Shown here: positions 35,692-50,067 of the stretch, piece after piece | How the letters are laid out: each line of letters begins with the position of its first letter | Numbering within the stretch: the first letter of the stretch is position 1 | From: Vitrella brassicaformis CCMP3155 | Lineage: Eukaryota > Protista > Chromerida | Assembly (NCBI GenBank): GCA_001179505.1 | Contig: CDMY01000456.1 | Location: 62,001 to 126,000 of the forward strand | Reading direction: 5' to 3' | DNA: 64,000 bases | Translations under genes and position numbers: made by a program | The notes under the pieces: generated by a model | What the model saw: only the letters and a program-made list of their open reading frames with translations | Databases searched by the model: none | Told to the model about the DNA's origin: nothing

Positions 35692-38131
35692 ATGTCTGGT
35701 GGAGTACTGAGCACACTGATGGCACTGCTATGCTGGATCTCGCAGATCTCGGGGTCAGTGTCATTGACGAGGCTCAGGCGGCCTCGCTGGGAGGCCAAAG
35801 GGCCAGTGGACGCCTTCAGCACACACACTTCTGCATTCGCGTAAGCCCAGCCCACTTCAAACACGCACAAAGAAAAGAATGGCTGTCTACTGTGTGCTCG
35901 TGTCTGTCTGTCATGGGCTCCTTCCTTGGGCACTGCAGGCCGTCGTCAGTGATTCCCAGACGCCAGCCGAGGCCACGGGCCGTGTCCACGGGCCAACAAG
36001 AGGGCGGCAGTGACGTGCAAACAATGCTCAGCTGGCTGAGGGAATGGGGGGCGGAGTGGCACCACGACGTGAGTGAGAGAAGGAGAGAGCGAGGCGAGAG
36101 GGAAGGAGGAATCGGTCGGTCCCACACATTGTGTGGCTGCTCCCTCCCATCTGTCAGGTGTGCGTCATGGACTTTGACGGCCTGAGGGGAGTGGGGGCGA
36201 GGCGACCGATAGAGGGCAGACAAACGCTCATCAAGGTGACAGACTGGATGGATGGCTGCGTGTGCACCCCCACATGCAGCACGTGTGGCGCGGTGGTCTG
36301 GTCTCCCTCTCTCCCTTTTATTTATGTGCAGATCCCGCTATCTTGCTGCATCCGCGTGACGGAGGGCAGGCCGTCACCAATCCCCAAACGAATAATCCAC
36401 CCAAACGTGACTGACCCAAACAAACCACACACCACACCTACCCACACAGCGCAGCGCAGCACAGCACAGCACAGGAGTCATCTATCCCCCTATGTTCTTG
36501 TCGATGACTCCTGTGGTGGCAGGTGTGGTCGTCACTGCCGTCGATCTTTTTGCAGCTGGCTCTGGTGCTCCTCTACGAGCGGCGGAAGGGCAGCAGGGCA
36601 CCCCATGTGCCATACACACACCTCCTGCCACAATCCTACCATATGAGGGCCGAGAGGTGGCCGCCGGCAGTCACGGACGCACTAAACTACCCACACCTCG
36701 TCGCGGCCTCACACCAGACCAAGTGTGTGGTAGGAGGGGTATGTATGGGTGTGACGTGATGTGTGGGCCAATCATTTCACCTGTGTGTGTGTGTGTTTGT
36801 GTGTGTCTGTGTGTGGTCAGTGAGCTGATCGACTGGTTCCTCGGTGCGCATGGTGTGATGGGTGAGCTGTTCTCCAGCCGGGAGGAGCTCGAGTGGGCGG
36901 TCGACTCGGCCGTCACCAGAGCCGTGCAGATCACGGTACGCAGAGGATACACAACATAACCGCACCAAAGGTGTGCACTGACTGTTTCTTCTTTTTTTTG
37001 TTGCATGTGGTTCGTCCCACGCATGCGCTGCACAGTGCGACGACGGTGATTCGTTGTGCCTGCTACCACTGATGGATATCCTCAACCACAGCACCACACA
37101 CGGACGTACGACAGCGGCCCCGCCGGCACCCACACAGACAGACACCCACACACTCTCTCTTGGCTGCTTTGCTTTGCTTTATGCACACTGTTTATTAGAT
37201 GGTGTGGCGATAGAGTACAGCCGACGGGAGGAGGCCTATGTGGCGACGTCGCTGCCTGGCTCGCGCTGGGAGGCCGGCGAGCAGATCTGGTGGAACTATG
37301 GACAGAAGGGAAACGACGAACTGCTCTCACAGGTATGCAATGCAGCCATCCATCCAGATCCATCTATCCATGCATGCATGCCACCCGCTCTCTCCCTGGT
37401 TGTCTCTCTGACTCCCTTGTGTGTCAGTTTGGCTTTGTGGAGGCCGACAATCGCCTCGACACCCACGTCATCGACCTCTCCACTGTGACGCGCTTCGCCC
37501 CCACCACCCCCAGTGTCAGCGGCCAGCAGCCGGCCAGCGACAGTGAGTGGCGCACACTGAGGTGGCGAGGCGGTGATTCAAATGCCGCCACCATCCCCGA
37601 TGCGCTGGTGCAGACCATCAGGCGGCACAGGTACGATGTGCTGATGTGTTGGTAGACCGAGGCTTGACGGACATTTGTGTGGGCTGTGCATGTCTTGTCT
37701 TGTGTTGTGTCGCAACCGCCACGCACAGGTCGTTTGGCGGTGGCGGTGGCGATGCGGGAGTGTGGGGCGCGATAAGCGAGATACTGCGTGAAGAGCTGGC
37801 AGGGGTCAGCCGCCGGCTTGATGCGCTCAGCTCGATAAGGCAGCGTTACGGCGACCAGAGGACGGCAGATGCAGTGTGGGTGGCGTCACAATACCTCATC
37901 GAGAAGACTAAGCTGCTGCAAGCAGGTCGGTCGGTGTGTGGGGTCATGCAGACCTCATTGATGGTGCGTGTGGGCATGTGAATGGGTGCAGGGCTGCGTC
38001 ACGCAGAAGAGATGGTGAGAGGGCGGCCGCTTCTACCTCTCCCAGACAGGCCACTCCGCGCTAGTGTGGCGGCTGTTGATTCGCCGGACCATTTCGACAA
38101 GACAAGGAGCATCATCCGTGTGTTTGGATGA
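35692..38131 (+). CDS. SET-domain protein-lysine methyltransferase, Rubisco LSMT/SETD3-like; probable bipartite plastid targeting
   Basis: MLSWLREWGA, GLRGVGARRPI, LALVLLYERRKG, LLPLMDILNHS, AGEQIWWNYGQKGNDELLSQFGFV. The N-terminus is a hydrophobic signal followed by an Arg/Ser-rich stretch. Confidence 0.85.
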
Positions 38132-38720
38132 GAAGAGGTGGCACCAATAAGTAGGACATGTGTGTGTGGGGGGTTATGTATGGTGTGGTGGGGTATGATG
38201 GGTTTGGTCTTGTGCCTGCCTTGTTGATAGCGGAGAGAGAGCTGCCGGCAGCATAGCATGTGCGATGAGTGGAAGGACGGGCAAGACGCTGCAAGCAACA
38301 GTCTGACGGTCACCTAAGCTCTAAAACCTGCGTTCATTGCCTGCCTGCATTTGACGCCCCTCTCTCTCCCCGTCTCTCTCTCTGATCCATCCCACGCATC
38401 CCGTGATGTAAATGTCCTCACATATGTTTGTATGCGACAAACCTCTAGATAGACACTCCCACTAACGCTTCTCGTGTCGCTCCTGAACTCACATGTGCTC
38501 GCACGCCCGATCGCACGGTGTCCAGTCGCCCCGGTCGGTCAGGGCAACTTGAGACCATGCTCACAGGCTACACACGTGAGCTCCATCGCGACACTCACTG
38601 AAGGCGCTCCACAAACCAAAAGCGGCTGGCCGTCCCTCCCCCCCTGTGTTTCTCGGCGGATACATTCAGACAGGCGACTGTCTGGCGGCCTCTGTATATA
38701 ATGCCCCCCTGTCTGTCTGT

Positions 38721-40735
38721 CTATCTGTGGTATCCGCCCTCCTCTGAGGGCCCCCGTGAAGACCGCCACCTGTCATAGCCGCGCCGCAGGTCGGGCGGCT
38801 CGAACGTCTCATCATATCGACGCCGCTCACGCTTCCGGCCTGACGAGTGAGGAAAAGACGGAAACACACATGAGTCTTGCAGGCAGAGACGAGAAGTGTT
38901 GTCTGTCGTGTGTGTGCGATAGATGCCTGCCTACCGACTGATCGTGATCGGCTGCGGGCCCGGCGACGGCCACCGCCATCGCTGAAACACCCACACAGCA
39001 CACACCCACACACGATTGCCGTCCTCTGTCTTTTCCTTCCCACGCTCTGTTCCTTCCTTTGCCTCCTTACCCCCAGTGGCCTGGCCCTGGCATGGGTAGG
39101 GGCGGGCCCCAGTTGCCCGCCCTCCTCCTCTCGTCATCATGGTGGCTGATGGGCGACGCAGGCAGCTCCTGCCGGCTGTCCGGTGGCGGAGCCGTCATAG
39201 AGTACGGCAGCGGATGGGTGGAAGGGAGGGGCGGGGGCCGCCTGTCTCGGTCGTATGGTGGCGATGGGGGTCGGCGGCCGCGTGGCGGCGACCGTGGCGG
39301 TGATCGGGGTGGGGTGTGTGGACGCTCTGCCGCGCCAGTGCCGAGGCAGTACTCGGGGTTGCGGCCAGTTATGTACGTCTCAGACCTGAGTGAGTGAGAT
39401 GGGGTCAAATCAACACACTCGTGCCATTTCTGGGGTGTGTGTGGTTGTGTGGTGTCACACCCACCTGTTGGGGATGCCTGAAAGAGCACCCGGCTCGACC
39501 CCGAGCCTCCTTATGAACTTGCCATTGCCGCTCTGCATCTCACGCTCCCACTCAGTCACGGGCCTGACCAATCCAGGCAGGCAGGCAGGCAGCATCACAC
39601 ACACACACATCCATCCATCCATCCAGATCCATCCTTTGGTACACTTATAACATTAGGTGACCGTCTTACTTTCCGTTGATGAGGAGGATGTACTTGGCAG
39701 CCCAGTGGTGCTTTTCTGGGTTTGAGGGAGCCACGGCGTCAGCTAATATCCTGAGCGAGCAAGGAAACACGGAAACACACGACATCGAGACAAAGCCGCG
39801 AGACTGCGATTTGAGTGGGGTGGTGTCATCGCCTCTCTCTCCCTCGTGCCCACCCGTCAGCTTGCCTGTCGCCCTCCCGGAGGTCAAACTTGCGGGACTG
39901 CGTCGGCGACACATAGATCATCCCTGGCCTGACAACACAACCCAACCAAACCATCCTCCTGTCGAATGTGCCGTGTGTGTGTGGGTGTGGTGTCTTACAT
40001 GAGGAACCCCTGTCGGTTGCCCTTGTGTATCTCGAGCCGCCCGCTCGCCGCCGCCACGCCCGCCTCCTCGCGATCCTTGAAGATGATCTGCTCCAACAAA
40101 CTGTCCCGAGCCATGAGAGATGCGTTCGCAATGCCTATGTCCCGCGCCATCTCGACCAGCTTCACCGTCCCCTTGTCCACCAGCTCAGCCACGTTCAGCA
40201 GCGGCCGCGACGGGTGCCATCGGCTGTTGGCGTCCTCCTGGTTGTGGCCCGTCGCGGCGTCCGACCCATCCTGCCCGTGCTCCTCGATCTGGCCCTCCTC
40301 CTCAGCCGCTCGCCGGCCGCCTGTGTCTGCGTCGGGGCCATCTCCTTCCTCTTCCTGCTTGATGACCTCAGAATGGTCGACCGCCTCCCATTCCGCAGGG
40401 GGCGGTGGCTGGTCGTCGTGATCGTGGTCGTGGTCGTGGTCATGGTCGTGGTCGTGAGGCTCCTGCTTGACGTAGGCGTCCGAGTGGTGGTTATCTTCCG
40501 TGTACTCGGGCTGTTGGTGCTGATCGTATTCCTCCGGGTGGGCAAAGTCGCCGTTGATAGCAGCTTCCTCGTGATCTGCATCTGCATCTGCATGGCCGTG
40601 CTCGTCTGGAGCCGGCATCTGGTCAGCTGAGTCGGGCGGATGGTCTTCGTTTGTCGGCTCCTCCCCATTGTCACCCATCATGGCTGCATCGCCGCTGCCC
40701 TGAGCGGCGGCCTCCTGCTCGTCGGCAAGGTCCAT
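38721..40735 (-). CDS. Protein with Rho transcription-terminator N-terminal and RNA-binding (OB/cold-shock) domains, no ATPase, RS/Pro-rich tail
   Basis: Spliced sequence LNVAELVDKGTVKLVEMARDIGIANASLMARDSLL...GRLEIHKGNRQGFLMPGMIYVSPTQSRKFDLREGDRILADAVAP...ILLING parallels bacterial Rho residues about 1-125 (G.LEI..GFL, IYVSP.Q.R.F.LR.GD.I). Exons 40735-39999, 39928-39866 and four or five more. Confidence 0.8.
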
Positions 40736-40819
40736 GATCTGGACAGAGATACAAACACAGCAGCACCTGGCGATGTCAGCACCAACTGATCTTCGTACCT
40801 CTTCAAGTTGTCACAGTCA

Positions 40820-42106
40820 ATGAAGCTCGCAAAGAATGCGAGCTGCCCCCAGTCTCTTGCATGCATTTTTCCCCTGCCGGTTGCTGGCCAGTCAATGGCA
40901 GCCAAGCGGTGCTCGATGACCGAGAGAATCCCGGAGATGCCGTCGCGAATCATGATTCCTCGTCGTCCGTCCAGAGATTCGCCGGAGACCCACCCGCCCC
41001 GCTCCCCATGCCCTGACCTGGGCTCTGACGCAGCCGAGAGCAAGGCCGCAGCCATCATCGAAGCGGACCGATCACTGCATGGAGACAACGTTGTCCTGCG
41101 GGAGGTGCCTTTGGAGGCGGTGAAGGAGATGGTGGAGTGGGGCATTACATCGCCAGCCCTTTTCCGTGAGATGACTGTTGCAGTGTGGGACGCCTTTATC
41201 GAGGAGAGAGGCAGCAACTGCAAGGTGCCGGCTGCGATGAGGGCTATAGTGCGGGAGAGACTTATATCGCTCAACAGGGGAGACGGCGGGTGTTCGAGGC
41301 ATGTCCTGCGAGACATCAATGCGAAGCTTGACCAAATCCTGCACCGCTTCTCCGCTTTGGAGGAGAGCAGACAGACCGATGGCGACTCAACCCCTGTGGC
41401 TGAAGACCTGACTGCTTTGCTCAAGTCCATAGAGGTGGCACGAGCAGAGGATTACTGACTGACTGACTGACTGATTGACTGACTGTTGGATACACATATG
41501 TCATAGGTACTGGAGGCCACACTGGACCAGTGTGTGTCGCGCCTGCCGGCTGTCAAGCACCAGCCATTGCCTGCAGAGGCGCCTCTATTGCCCCCACTAT
41601 CCACACCTACCGTGAGTGCTGGCATCTCTTTCAAGCCCACCCCAGCCCTGTCTTCACCAAGCCGCCACACAGCCGTCTCTCCGGCTTACCAGCCACTTAC
41701 GGAGCCATCGCCCGGCCAATCCACTCGCTACGGCGCTCCGTTGCTTTCTGTGCCTTCCCTTGCACACCCTGCCCCGCCTTTAAAACCTAAAGGGACTGAT
41801 ATGCCTAAGTCGCCGGCAGCCCTGACACCGCCGTCCATTCTCGATGGCAAGAAACAGCTGTTCGACCCAGAGACATATCTGAAGGACATCCCTCTGATGG
41901 AGCCCTCGTACAATGTCATTAGCAGCCCATTCACAGTCGATCACAGCAGAGAATGGGCAGAGCCTCAGGCAGAGAGGTCTCCTGAGCGGACGTTCTTCTC
42001 TTCTTCTGCTTCTCTTTCCAAATTCGGGGCGGGGGGCGGGTTTGGGTTTGGTAGAGCAGGACGCGACAGCAGCCATGCATCGTTTTACAGAAGCATCCTT
42101 AAGTGA
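40820..42106 (+). CDS. Two-exon hypothetical protein, helical N-half and Pro/Ser-rich C-half
   Basis: ORFs 40808-41458 and 41534-42106 join through an intron (ATAGAG|GTGGCA...TCATAG|GTACTG), giving LLKSIE-VLEATLDQCVSRLP. The start codon is uncertain (40820 or 40895). Confidence 0.5.
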
Positions 42107-45659: not shown

Positions 45660-48600
45660 CTACACAGCGTCGTATATGAGAGTGCGCTCGTCCGCCTCGA
45701 GCGGCCGCACACGCGGCAGCCTCCGAGGCGACCACTGCCCTGCCATCTGCGACCATGTGCGCGGCGACCACTGCCCACCCCGCCGTGTGGTTCCATCATG
45801 GGTGAAACGGACAGGCCGGAACCATCTGCACACATGGATGGATGGATGGATAAGCAGAGAGAGAGAGGCCCCTTGTGTGTATGTGATTGCTGTGGTCGTG
45901 TGGTGTGGTGGGTGCCACCGTTGGGTGGTACCTGAGCGACAGGGAGCATCCGACCACGATGAGCGAGCTGCAGGCCATGGCGGCGCCTGCCAGGGGAGGC
46001 GGGATGGTCAGCGGATAGAACAGCCCCGCTGCCAATGGCAGGCCGATCAGGTTGAAGATACACGCCCAGAAGAAATTGCTGCATTGCAAGCACAGACGAC
46101 CTGAGAGGTGTGGTGCTGATGCACGTCTGGTCTGTCCTTTTGTCTGTCTGTCTGTCTGTCTGACCATCTGATGACAAATATGGTGGTTCTGCAAAGCTTG
46201 AAGAACGTTGCCAGGTCGGCGAGGCCGGTGCGCATGAGCACCACGTCGGCCGCAGCGATCGTCACCTGCGCCCCCGCCCCAACCGCAATGCCCACGTCGG
46301 CCTGGGCCAACGCTGGCGAGTCGTTGATGCCGTCACCAGCCATCACAACGGTCCCTGTGGCACAACACAGCACACACCACAACACCCCACACATGAGGGA
46401 CGAAGGTGCATTATCCTTACCGCGCCGTGTTGTGCTGTGGTGTGCTGTGCTGAGTCACCTTTCTTGTCGTTTGCGAGTTTCTGCACCAGCTTGCATTTGT
46501 CCGCAGGCAGCGCGGGCGCGACGACCTTGTCGATCTCCAGCCCCACCTTGCGGCCGACCGCATGTGCGGTGCTGGCGTTGTCGCCCGAGCACATCCACAC
46601 GTCCATGTGTCCGCCCTCCGACCCCCGCAGCCACCCCAGGCACGCCGCGCTATCCTCATGCACCTCATCTCGCAACGCCACCGCCCCCAGGCACACAAAC
46701 CCCACGTGCAACACCGCCACCGTGCAGCCGTCGGCCTGCTCCCGCCCCACCCACCCCTCGAGCAAAGGCCAGTCGGGAGTGGTGTTGGTGCTGGCGGACG
46801 GCAGCAGACAGCCGCAGTTGGGGCCGTTGACCATGCACCGGCAGGGGTCGCACCGACACATGGGCGAGTTGCACTTCCCAGGGGCGCCACTCCCTTTGTC
46901 TGCTGTGTCGTCTGTTGTGGGCCGTGGGGTGCGGTTGGGGCTCCGGGCGGCAGCGAGGCTGAGGACGCCGACTTGGCGGCCGGCCACGCGGCACTCCACC
47001 CCCTTGCCCGGCAGGTTCTGGAAGTCTGTCGGCTCGGCGAAGGGCGCCAGCCCTGGCTGCTTGGCCGCGTGCTCGGCGATGGCCCGCCCCAGCGGGTGCT
47101 CGCTGAGCGACTCGACAGACCCCAGCAGCCACCAGAACCACCGCATACCCTTCTGCACCTCATCGTGTGAGCACCCCTTGCTGCTGTTGCGCAGCACGTC
47201 GGTATTCTCAATGGGAGGCGGCGGCGACACGGCGATCTCGCCCTCTGATGCGGTGGTCTCGGCCCCAGAGAAATACACCTCGCTCGACGAGCTGTTAATC
47301 GTGTCGCGGGCGGTGTCGCGGTCGCTGTGCGGGGGCGTGAGTATGCCGCCTGACGCCGTGCACAGCTTGGCGGCGGGGAAGGAGGTCGGTAAGATGGCGG
47401 CCGCGACCACGACCGGCTTTCCCTTCGTCAGAGTGCCGGTCTTGTCCAACACGAGGCTCTTTGCGTGCGCGCCCGACTCGAGAGGCGCCCCACCCTTGAT
47501 CAGTATGCCGTGCTCGGCCGCGAGCCCGGTGGCGACCATCACAGCTGTCGGGGTGGCCAGACCTGCGCGCACACAGAGGGAGAGGGAGGGTCATCTCATC
47601 AGATCGGTCAGAGGTCCGTATGGCATAGCATGGGTACCGAGGGCACATGGGCAGGCGATGGCGAGCACGGCGATGCCGAACCTGAGTGCGAACATGGCCT
47701 TGGTGGCCGTGGGGTGGGGGTCGTCTGCGGGGTCGATGCCGGGCACGCGGGGAGCGATGACGCCCGTGAACACCAGAGCGAACCACACGACCGACGTCAC
47801 AGCCGCCAGCATAGCCACACACGGCACAAAGTACCTGAATGGGAGAGGAGGAGGAGGAGGAGGAGGAAGAAGGCAGGCGGCCATGCATCCTCGGTGTGTG
47901 TCGCATGTGTGGATCGATTTGCACACCCCGCGATTCTGTCGGCCAGTTGCTGCGACTGCGTTTTGGAGGTCTGGGCCTCCTCGACCAGCTTGACAATCTG
48001 GCCAAGAGCGGTCTGGCCGCCGATCTTGGTGGTCTGCAGCAGCATCCCCCCCGACAGGCACGTGCTGCCCCCCAGCACCATGTTGCCGTGCTCCTTCTCC
48101 ACCGGCCGGCTCTCCCCCGTGATGAGGCTCTCGTCCACCGACACGATGCCGTGACTCACTTGGATGCCGTCGACGGGGATCAGCCCGCCCGGGTAGACCT
48201 TGAGAGTGTCTCCGATCTCTATCAGATCGGTGGTGATCTCTCTCTCGGTCTCGGTGCCGTCGGCTGCTTGAGGCTGGAGGAACGCTGTGGTGGGTTTGAG
48301 GGCCAGCAGATGGTCGAGAGCTGCCATGGTGCGGTGCTTGGCGTGGTGCTCCAGCAGCTTGCCAACCATCACCACCGTGATCAGGATGACCGACGTGTCG
48401 AAGAAGGTCATCGGATCCTCGACGATTCCCCCTTTTATCTGCCCATGGTCCTCCACCGCCCCCGCAACAGCCGCAAACACCAGCACACCCACCGAGTAAA
48501 GATACGCCATATTGGTCGCCAGGCTGACCAGCACGTCCATGTTGGCCGCGCCGTGCTTGAGTGCCGCGTACGCCCCCGTGTGGAACCGCCGGCCCCACCA

Positions 48601-50067
48601 CAGCTGCACGGGCGTCGCGAGCACCAGCTGCAGGGCCGCCGCGACAGAGAGAGAGACGTGAGGGATGAGAGGCCGGCGCAGGAAGGACGGCAGATTTTCT
48701 GGATCAGTGGTCGACAGGATGAACACCAGAATGGCCGGCAAGATGCTGATGGACCACACATGCAGGCAGACACACAGAAGAGTGCGTCTTTCTCTGTGCG
48801 CTTTGTGCTGCTTGGTGCAGTTGGTCGCCGACCAGCAGAAGATGTCCCCGCGTATCTGCCGCTGTGTCCGCTTCATCTTGTCGTGCTCTCCCCCATCGCT
48901 CTCGGCGCTCCACTCGGCGTCGTACCCCGCCTCGCGCAGCAGCCGCAAGATGCTTCGCGCACCAACCACATGAGGGTTGTACGACACAGTGACGCGCACG
49001 CCGTCCGGTAGAGATGACCGTGACCGGGCCGCCTTGGTCTGGCGGCTTCTGATGCAGCCGAGGATGCCGTCAGTGCCCGTCAGAAAGCTCTCCACGCCGG
49101 CGGCCTCGTCGGCGGTCGAAGCACTCTTGACATGGACTCTCAGGTGAGCAACGGCCTGACCCATCAACACGCAACATGTGTGTGTCATGTGTCTGCCCGC
49201 TCTCTCTGTTCCTCGATCGGCTCACGTCGGAGTGTCCTTCTGTCGTGTCCTCTAATGGCTGGTCGCTGGCGAGAGTGGCGTCATATCCGACCATCTCAAT
49301 GTACTCGCACAGGTCATCGGCACTCACACGCGCGCCGTCGTACTCTATGGACGCTCGGTTGCGAATCAGATTGACAGACACGCCACGGATGCCCTGCACA
49401 CACACACAGAGGGAGGGAGGCAACGTGTGCCCGTCCACCTGACACGCCCTTCCCCCCCACTCACCTGTTTCTTCTTGAGGTGTTCCTCGACGGTCTTGAC
49501 GCACGAGGCACACGTCATGCCGCCCACAGTGATCTCGGCGTGGCGCCAGCTGGCCGCGTGGGCGGGGGAGCCCCTGGACATCCGTCGGGGGCTCGCGTCC
49601 GTGTCGGCCGTCACCTGGTGATAACAAGACCATGCGTGCAGACGGTTAAGAGAGTTTGATGCTGGCTGGGCTGACTGACCTCGGCATCGAATCCGATGTC
49701 ATCAATTGCTGAGGCAAGCTCGGAGGCACTCATCTGATGTGTCACACAAAGGACAGGGAGTCGTTGCTTCTTCCCTTTTTCGGCGTGGGTCCGTTTGTGT
49801 AGCGTTCGTACTGTGGTGGGGTGGTATTTGACAGTAGCCTTCTCTGTCAGGAGGTTGACGTGTGCCGACTCCACGCCAGGAAACTGCCGCAGCCGGCCCT
49901 CCACCGCGCCAACACACGAGCCACAGGTCATCCCTGCATAGCACAGCCAACGAAGGAAACAAGTGAATGAATCACATCAGGCCGTGAACAGAAAACCTTG
50001 GACGATGCCCGGACCTACCTTGGATGCGCAGCTCGGCCCTCCGCATGGGTTTCGGCTCATCGGCCAT
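45660..50067 (-). CDS. ATP7: P1B-type heavy-metal (Cu-type) transporting ATPase
   Basis: Two HMA motifs GMTCGSC and GMTCASC plus a degenerate third; [58 protein letters not shown]. Confidence 0.95.

Follow-up and report, generated by a model that had tools for sequence, protein, structure and literature searches.

A spliced gene of the chromerid Vitrella brassicaformis encodes a homologue of the N-terminal RNA-binding domain of Rho without its ATPase

A 64,000-nucleotide (nt) stretch of the Vitrella brassicaformis CCMP3155 genome (assembly GCA_001179505.1, contig CDMY01000456.1, positions 62,001 to 126,000; hereafter the window, whose own numbering is used throughout) carries on its minus strand, at 38721-40735, a gene whose product contains the N-terminal domain of the bacterial terminator Rho and lacks the ATPase of that enzyme. 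The gene comprises seven exons and six introns, which were modelled from reading frames and splice signals and are borne out by RNA contigs, and the boundaries 40735 and 38721 are exactly those of the start and stop codons (TAG, 38721-38723). The product has 486 amino acids (aa), or about 54 kDa. All six junctions occur as modelled in spliced Logan contigs of the public runs X1, X6 and X7, the first of which comes from a separate study; these data are contigs, and the RNA status of the runs was guessed or is unrecorded. An earlier note on this DNA, made from the letters alone, had described a Rho-like module spread across three introns. The gene has six, and an additional exon of 99 nt (exon 4, 39465-39563). 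The peptide strings quoted in that note are all found in one spliced minus-strand frame, namely (HD)7 at residues 94-107, QGFLM at 242-246, MIYVSPTQ at 249-256 and FDLREGD at 260-266, followed in the tail by RSPPRSPP... at 354-376, RRRARSRSRS at 437-446 and RKRERRRYD at 449-457.

The exons lie, in the direction of transcription, at 40735-39999, 39928-39866, 39750-39670, 39563-39465, 39385-39071, 38981-38935 and 38839-38721, and the intervening introns measure 70, 115, 106, 79, 89 and 95 nt. Introns 1 to 3 interrupt the Rho-like part and introns 4 to 6 the tail. Intron 1 (39929-39998; GT-AG, phase 2) is removed in X1, X6 and X7, whose contigs join 39927 to 39998 (cut +1), and the removal of intron 3 (39564-39669; GT-AG, phase 2) is seen in the same runs as adjacent pieces at 39463-39562 and 39669-39749. 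Intron 2 (39751-39865; phase 2) is of the GC-AG type: the contigs of all three runs skip 115 nt, and only the +1 placement of the joint yields GC..AG. A variant of this intron with an in-frame GT donor 12 nt downstream (103 nt, with four extra residues in the product) was ruled out, since the contigs skip 115 nt. The three introns of the tail (39386-39464, 38982-39070 and 38840-38934, the last in phase 1) are all GT-AG and are documented by RNA contigs. Five of the six acceptors continue with a G after the AG.

Upstream of the coding region, the 5' untranslated region (UTR) spans 40736-40810 as far as the RNA contig extends (record 5 of X6 ends at 40810). An in-frame TGA is found at 40811-40813, 26 codons 5' of the ATG, with no in-frame ATG between them. 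Downstream, the 3' UTR (38300-38720) is contiguous with the genome in the RNA contigs, which run for at least 420 nt of unspliced sequence past the stop codon and then into the convergent neighbour, which indicates that the stop codon at 38721 is genuinely present in the transcript as assembled. The structure, splicing and expression of the gene are established. Its G+C content is 0.59, compared with 0.55-0.62 in the window.

Residues 180-295 of the product are in register with residues 1-124 of Escherichia coli Rho and consist of a helix bundle followed by an oligonucleotide/oligosaccharide-binding (OB) fold, in the order and with the spacing of Rho. A blastp comparison with E. coli Rho (L001) aligned residues 180-287 with Rho 1-116 (39.3 bits, E 2e-7). 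With a profile of the Rho N-terminal domain made from 79 gammaproteobacterial sequences (L002-L081; Rho 76-98 % identical to E. coli Rho), 30.9 bits were obtained on the whole protein and 35.9 bits on residues 176-305, compared with a maximum of 8.8 bits among 2000 shuffles of the latter. When exon 2 was masked, 12.7 bits were left, which indicates that the signal goes beyond the signature motif. Alignment by hhalign gave a probability of 97.7 % (E 1.6e-12, 100 columns, 31 % identity), and the OB part is 31-35 % identical to that of E. coli Rho. These comparisons place the similarity to Rho far beyond chance, and the homology is established.

The OB part is assembled from the end of exon 1 and from exons 2 and 3. 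The last segment of exon 1 (39999-40057, residues 227-246, GRLEIH... QGFLM) corresponds in the alignments to Rho 48-66 and provides strands 1 and 2. Exon 2 (residues 246-267) encodes the Rho signature stretch, as recognised by Pfam, alignment and tblastn; 13 of its 20 residues aligned with E. coli Rho 76-95, the most conserved stretch of Rho, are identical (65 %), and these 20 residues alone match Pfam Rho_RNA_bind (PF07497) with 20.9 bits (E 3.3e-4). Exon 3 (residues 267-294) supplies the last OB strands according to the alignment and to the Pfam match of the spliced domain, which reaches profile position 71 of 73; on its own it gives just a weak, sub-threshold match to DUF2484. The Rho-like part ends at the start of exon 4 (residues 294-327), where KP corresponds to Rho K123 and P124, and gives way to a linker without a detectable family. 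On the 78-residue spliced OB part, Rho_RNA_bind scores 30.9 bits (E 2.4e-7, profile 24-71 of 73), above its cut-off of 27. The next family, S1CSD-TOTE-2, stays below its cut-off with 21.4 bits and also matches all 20 of the bacterial Rho sequences in the alignment. The cold-shock (CSD, PF00313), S1 (PF00575) and S1-like profiles gave no match at E<=1 on the spliced OB part or on the exon pieces; the case that the earlier note had named as fatal to its proposal, a better fit to a cold-shock/S1 or CCAR1-type domain, did not occur at that threshold.

The helix bundle is encoded by exon 1 at 40058-40198 (residues 180-226, Rho 1-47). The sole family match in the exon-1 tail is to Pfam Rho_N (PF07498), with 18.6 bits (E 0.0019, profile 1-35 of 43) and a gathering cut-off of 24.9; the pair of Pfam matches anticipated in the earlier note was thus obtained in full for Rho_RNA_bind and only below threshold for Rho_N. 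Aligned with 20 Rho sequences, the bundle shows one gap, of one residue, and against Rho 1-47 it shows no internal gap, for which reason homology to Rho_N is likely despite the missed formal cut-off. An Atlas feature search returned Rho_N clusters. Both modules announced in the earlier note were recovered by blastp, the profile, hhalign and Pfam, which together argue that the protein contains a genuine homologue of the Rho N-terminal domain, helix bundle and OB primary RNA-binding fold included.

Structural modelling was carried out on the exon-1 tail (71 residues). AlphaFold2 (AF2), supplied with the alignment of 20 Rho sequences, produced three helices (model residues 7-11, 15-24 and 35-49) and a beta hairpin, with a mean predicted local distance difference test (pLDDT) score of 81.7 and values above 90 over the bundle. 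The 13 best matches of this model in the PDB were all Rho chains (root-mean-square deviation 1.0-1.9 A over 46-48 columns, probability 0.84-0.99), with E-values of 0.28-0.97, which are in line with the shortness of the fragment, and an Atlas shape search returned Rho clusters only. Because the input alignment was Rho, the structural evidence is merely supportive, and the case for homology is one of sequence.

The RecA-type ATPase (PF00006) is absent: exons 4 to 7 match no Pfam family, tblastn of E. coli Rho against the window finds exon 2 alone below E 0.01 and no part of the ATPase, and the transcript contains no further coding exons down to the stop at 38721. The earlier note was right on this point. 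The contacts that hold the Rho ring together lie mainly in the ATPase domain. Unlike the Rho enzyme, the Vitrella protein is devoid of this C-terminal domain, and so would neither assemble into a hexameric ring nor translocate, and would lack the secondary RNA site.

The absence of an organellar leader, also claimed from the letters, agrees with the composition of the N-terminus and with the in-frame TGA upstream. The first 40 residues contain 12 D/E, no K/R and no hydrophobic stretch, and the highest 15-residue hydropathy within the first 115 residues is -0.21. Neither a signal peptide nor a transit peptide or basic presequence is recognisable from N-terminal composition and hydropathy (no dedicated predictor was used). 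The contig of the divergent neighbour begins at 40858, so that any leader exon further upstream would have to overlap that gene. Because no signal peptide or presequence is recognised and the tail carries basic patches, the protein would most likely work in the nucleus or the cytosol.

The Rho-like domain is set between two flanks of opposite charge. The first part of exon 1 (40211-40735, residues 1-175) encodes an acidic, His-rich segment, assigned as disordered from its composition, with 55 D+E, 5 K+R and 19 His (isoelectric point, pI, 4.1) and no Pfam match. It includes the acidic (HD)n run pointed out in the earlier note, a perfect (His-Asp)7 repeat at 40394-40435. In run X8, the breaks in short-read DNA contigs coincide with the (His-Asp)7 region and with a GCATCT repeat at about 40570-40595, and about 40211-40574 is uncovered. 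At the other end, exon 5 (residues 327-432) encodes a stretch of tail rich in Pro, Arg and Ser that contains RSPP repeats and matches no Pfam family at E<=0.1, exon 6 (residues 432-448) an Arg-rich segment with the sole arginine-serine (RS) run, RSRSRS, and the coding part of exon 7 (residues 448-486) the basic patch RKRERRR, a candidate nuclear localisation signal, before the stop. Over residues 346-486 the composition is 21 % Arg, 21 % Pro and 10 % Ser (pI 11.5).

On account of this tail the product had been called a protein of the serine/arginine-rich (SR) type. SR proteins have one or two N-terminal RNA recognition motifs (RRMs) and an RS domain of at least 50 residues with an RS content above 40 %. 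The Vitrella protein does resemble SR and SR-like proteins in that a basic tail with Arg-Ser and Ser-Pro dipeptides stands beside a nucleic-acid-binding fold. Unlike them, it has no RRM match in any exon in Pfam, an RS content far under the definition and a tail equally rich in Pro and Arg. With only 11 RS/SR dipeptides in residues 301-486 (186 residues; longest run RSRSRS) and no RRM, it falls outside the usual definition of an SR protein. The accurate label is an Arg/Pro/Ser-rich basic disordered tail, and "SR-like" is overstated.

The core primary site of Rho, which stacks on and reads YC, is presumably formed by F64, R66, D78, Y80, E108, R109 and Y110 (crystal structures of 1999 and 2003); we take R66 and D78 to be the residues that read cytosine by hydrogen bonding, as in the Rho130 and 1PVO structures. 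When Rho residues were mapped through the spliced OB alignment, F64 (F244), Y80 (Y251) and E108 (E279) of this core were found to be identical in Vitrella and R109K (K280) and Y110H (H281) conservative, while R66M and D78M are lost. Beyond the core, P83, Q85, R87, F89 and K115 (K286) are identical, S84T and R88K (K259) are conservative, and F62Q, R102V and K105S are replacements. The nine-residue loop between strands 2 and 3 of Rho is deleted, and the basic patch of its helix bundle (R28, R30, K31) is lost. With these replacements and losses, nucleic-acid binding is not assured. Vitrella retains the stacking residues, the core hydrophobics of the OB fold and the greater part of the extended RNA path, and a stacking cleft for single strands is plausible. 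The proposal that the protein reads C-rich RNA as Rho does fared less well: with the presumed cytosine-reading residues R66 and D78 both replaced by Met, and F62 by Gln, a Rho-like cytosine preference is not supported, and the specificity probably differs from that of Rho. Binding of single-stranded RNA or DNA in the nucleus is its probable, inferred function. The OB cleft would then bind single-stranded RNA (or single-stranded DNA) without a motor, and the charged disordered flanks would regulate this binding or recruit partners. The extended-site residues of the RNA path of Rho were taken from published work, in which R88E abolished rut RNA binding, K115E lowered it, and dC15 was bound by the primary site (PMC11018626).

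Among known systems, Rho of E. coli (PDB 1A62, 2A8V, 1PVO) shares with the Vitrella protein the helix bundle and the OB fold that follows it, with the GF.FL and IYVSPSQ.R.F.LR.GD stretches. It differs in that the Vitrella domain stands between an acidic stretch of about 175 residues and a basic or linker stretch of about 185, in a product spread over seven eukaryotic exons. Reuse of the helix-extended-helix motif of Rho_N has been described in RHON1 of Arabidopsis (At1g06190), whose 40-residue Rho-N motif binds RNA (PMC3458557), and in a virus of eukaryotes, Medusavirus, four virion proteins of which carry the motif (PMC6450098). By their descriptions these proteins have the short Rho-N motif only, with no Rho OB fold reported, as the earlier note had stated for RHON1. 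RHON1 is moreover chloroplast-targeted with a C-terminal motif, whereas that of Vitrella precedes the OB primary binding domain, as in Rho. Cold-shock and S1 proteins also have a small five-stranded OB fold and bind single strands through aromatics on strands 2 and 3; the Vitrella OB differs from them in having no CSD or S1 match at E<=1 and Rho_RNA_bind as its sole above-threshold family. A survey of 2024 reported Rho homologues to be absent from eukaryotes (PMC11347177). No published description of a eukaryotic Rho_RNA_bind protein was found, and an automatic database annotation may exist.

In the search for relatives, the 82-residue exon-1 tail was compared exhaustively with 1.84 billion representatives and gave no match at E<=0.001. 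Sensitivity was limited by the query, an exon-1 tail of 71-82 residues, with which orthologues sharing about 35-40 % identity would lie at the edge of detection. The Vitrella protein itself was not returned either; it is therefore missing from the library, and the negative outcome carries little weight. Word searches with exon 1 over the ranges 135-430 aa and 149-474 aa, metagenome and viral scans with Vitrella-derived patterns, exact look-ups of 13 variants of the open reading frame (ORF) or partial product, and small-ORF look-ups for a transcript contig likewise found no match. The matches of a scan with a mixed alignment were discarded: gammaproteobacterial patterns had been used, and the matches could not be confirmed against the Vitrella row. 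Three IMG/VR contigs classed as viral (L084, L085 and L086, one labelled GVMAG) were considered as motor-less forms and rejected, since the Rho of each includes the ATPase domain and shares 63-74 % identity with E. coli Rho (in L085 the gene is truncated where the contig begins). These genes point to a prophage flank or mis-binned bacterial DNA rather than to a viral rho. The uniqueness of the protein, or a lack of eukaryotic relatives, is unproven.

In our judgement the locus is probably an expressed, intron-bearing nuclear gene acquired from bacteria, whose product carries a true homologue of the Rho N-terminal domain between acidic and basic flanks, without the ATPase, and is a putative motor-less binder of nucleic acid. 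The earlier observation is confirmed. Its central interpretation, that a eukaryotic gene encodes the Rho RNA-binding domain without the motor, is supported at the level of the sequence; the SR-like label, the reading of C-rich RNA and the role in RNA processing are not. Several points weigh against this reading. Rho_N alone falls short of its cut-off and belongs to a widespread, SAP-like kind of helix-extended-helix motif; the AF2 model built on the Rho alignment is circular and limited to the exon-1 tail, and modelling of that tail from its single sequence gave one long, uninformative helix; five RNA-contact positions are replaced, with the loop and the bundle patch gone; and no orthologue was found from which purifying selection could be read. 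The first of these would fit a native SAP-like helix motif joined to a generic cold-shock/S1-type OB fold that resembles Rho without common descent, as would the presence of Tho1 SAP domains among the weak structural matches (ranks 45-46) and the second, S1/CSD-like family on the OB part. Convergence of this sort is highly improbable, given that Rho_RNA_bind exceeds its curated cut-off where the CSD, S1 and S1-like profiles find nothing at E<=1, that the S1CSD-TOTE-2 cross-match is common to all bacterial Rho sequences scanned, and that both domains follow Rho in order and spacing from its residue 1, with the 13 identities in its most conserved stretch.

The losses on the binding surface, together with the long low-complexity flanks and the blank searches, could also describe an evolutionary remnant, the front end of a once complete transferred rho that is transcribed and drifting with no selected function. 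We regard this as very unlikely: the frame of 486 codons is intact over seven exons, six introns are precisely spliced, the spliced form is assembled in all three runs that show the gene, and the OB fold retains its hydrophobic core and its stacking residues. A true SR-type factor for splicing or 3'-end processing, with the Rho module in place of an RRM and a preference for C-rich RNA, would account for the RSPP repeats, the RSRSRS run, the possible nuclear localisation patches and the missing organellar leader; the want of an RRM, the low RS/SR count and the Met residues at the presumed cytosine-specifying positions 66 and 78 make it unlikely. That the only detectable relatives are bacterial might point to contamination or to a mis-assembled bacterial fragment, an explanation of negligible probability that is refuted by the spliced contigs. 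Six spliceosomal introns are removed in RNA, the G+C content falls within the range of the window, the low-complexity flanks are of eukaryotic type, and the gene sits between other spliced genes.

As regards origin, the six introns, five of them with G after AG, and the host-like composition argue for long nuclear residence and against contamination. The gene would most likely have entered from a bacterium long enough ago to gain these introns. Rho is reported to be missing from cyanobacteria (PMC12642595), and on that basis the plastid is an unlikely endosymbiotic origin. The alignable part, about 110 residues with identities of about 30 %, is too little to identify the bacterial donor. Rho of Firmicutes and Thermotogae, with its LEIH and NG..P forms, may stand closer to the Vitrella domain than that of gammaproteobacteria. 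A more far-reaching claim, that among eukaryotic nuclear proteins this is the first to be recognised as built on the entire primary RNA-binding domain of Rho, a horizontally transferred, intron-furnished and motor-less putative reader of single-stranded RNA in nuclear RNA metabolism with a specificity other than C-rich rut, is tentative and rather doubtful.

That a spliced, expressed eukaryotic gene contains the entire N-terminal domain of Rho implies that this module can function, or at any rate survive, in the absence of its motor, and provides a natural test of how an isolated Rho primary binding site behaves. It adds a further case of bacterial domain capture, in a lineage next to the apicomplexan parasites. 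The argument for Rho as a drug target is unaffected, since the Vitrella protein has neither the ATPase nor the bicyclomycin site. The weight of the finding is limited by the single species known to carry the protein and by a function inferred from sequence.

The gene is arranged head to head with a plus-strand neighbour (40736-40860): its contig ends at 40810, and that of the neighbour begins at 40858, with a very short shared promoter region. This divergent neighbour has an ORF of 216 aa (40808-41458) without a Pfam family, and a (TGAC)n microsatellite (41455-41486) lies immediately 3' of its stop codon. On the other side (37000-38720), contigs of X6 and X7 run on for 1.7-2.6 kb past 38300, into the plus-strand neighbour that converges on the gene; in these unstranded assemblies the two genes overlap or meet at their 3' ends. 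Two ORF pieces of the convergent neighbour were scanned and gave no Pfam match. Runs rich in CA/TG are common in the introns of the region. Further along, a gene for a heavy-metal P-type ATPase is found on the minus strand at 46343-49188, with pieces matching HMA, E1-E2_ATPase and Hydrolase that occur as separate ORFs (L082, L083) on the Logan contigs ERR558200 and ERR558149.

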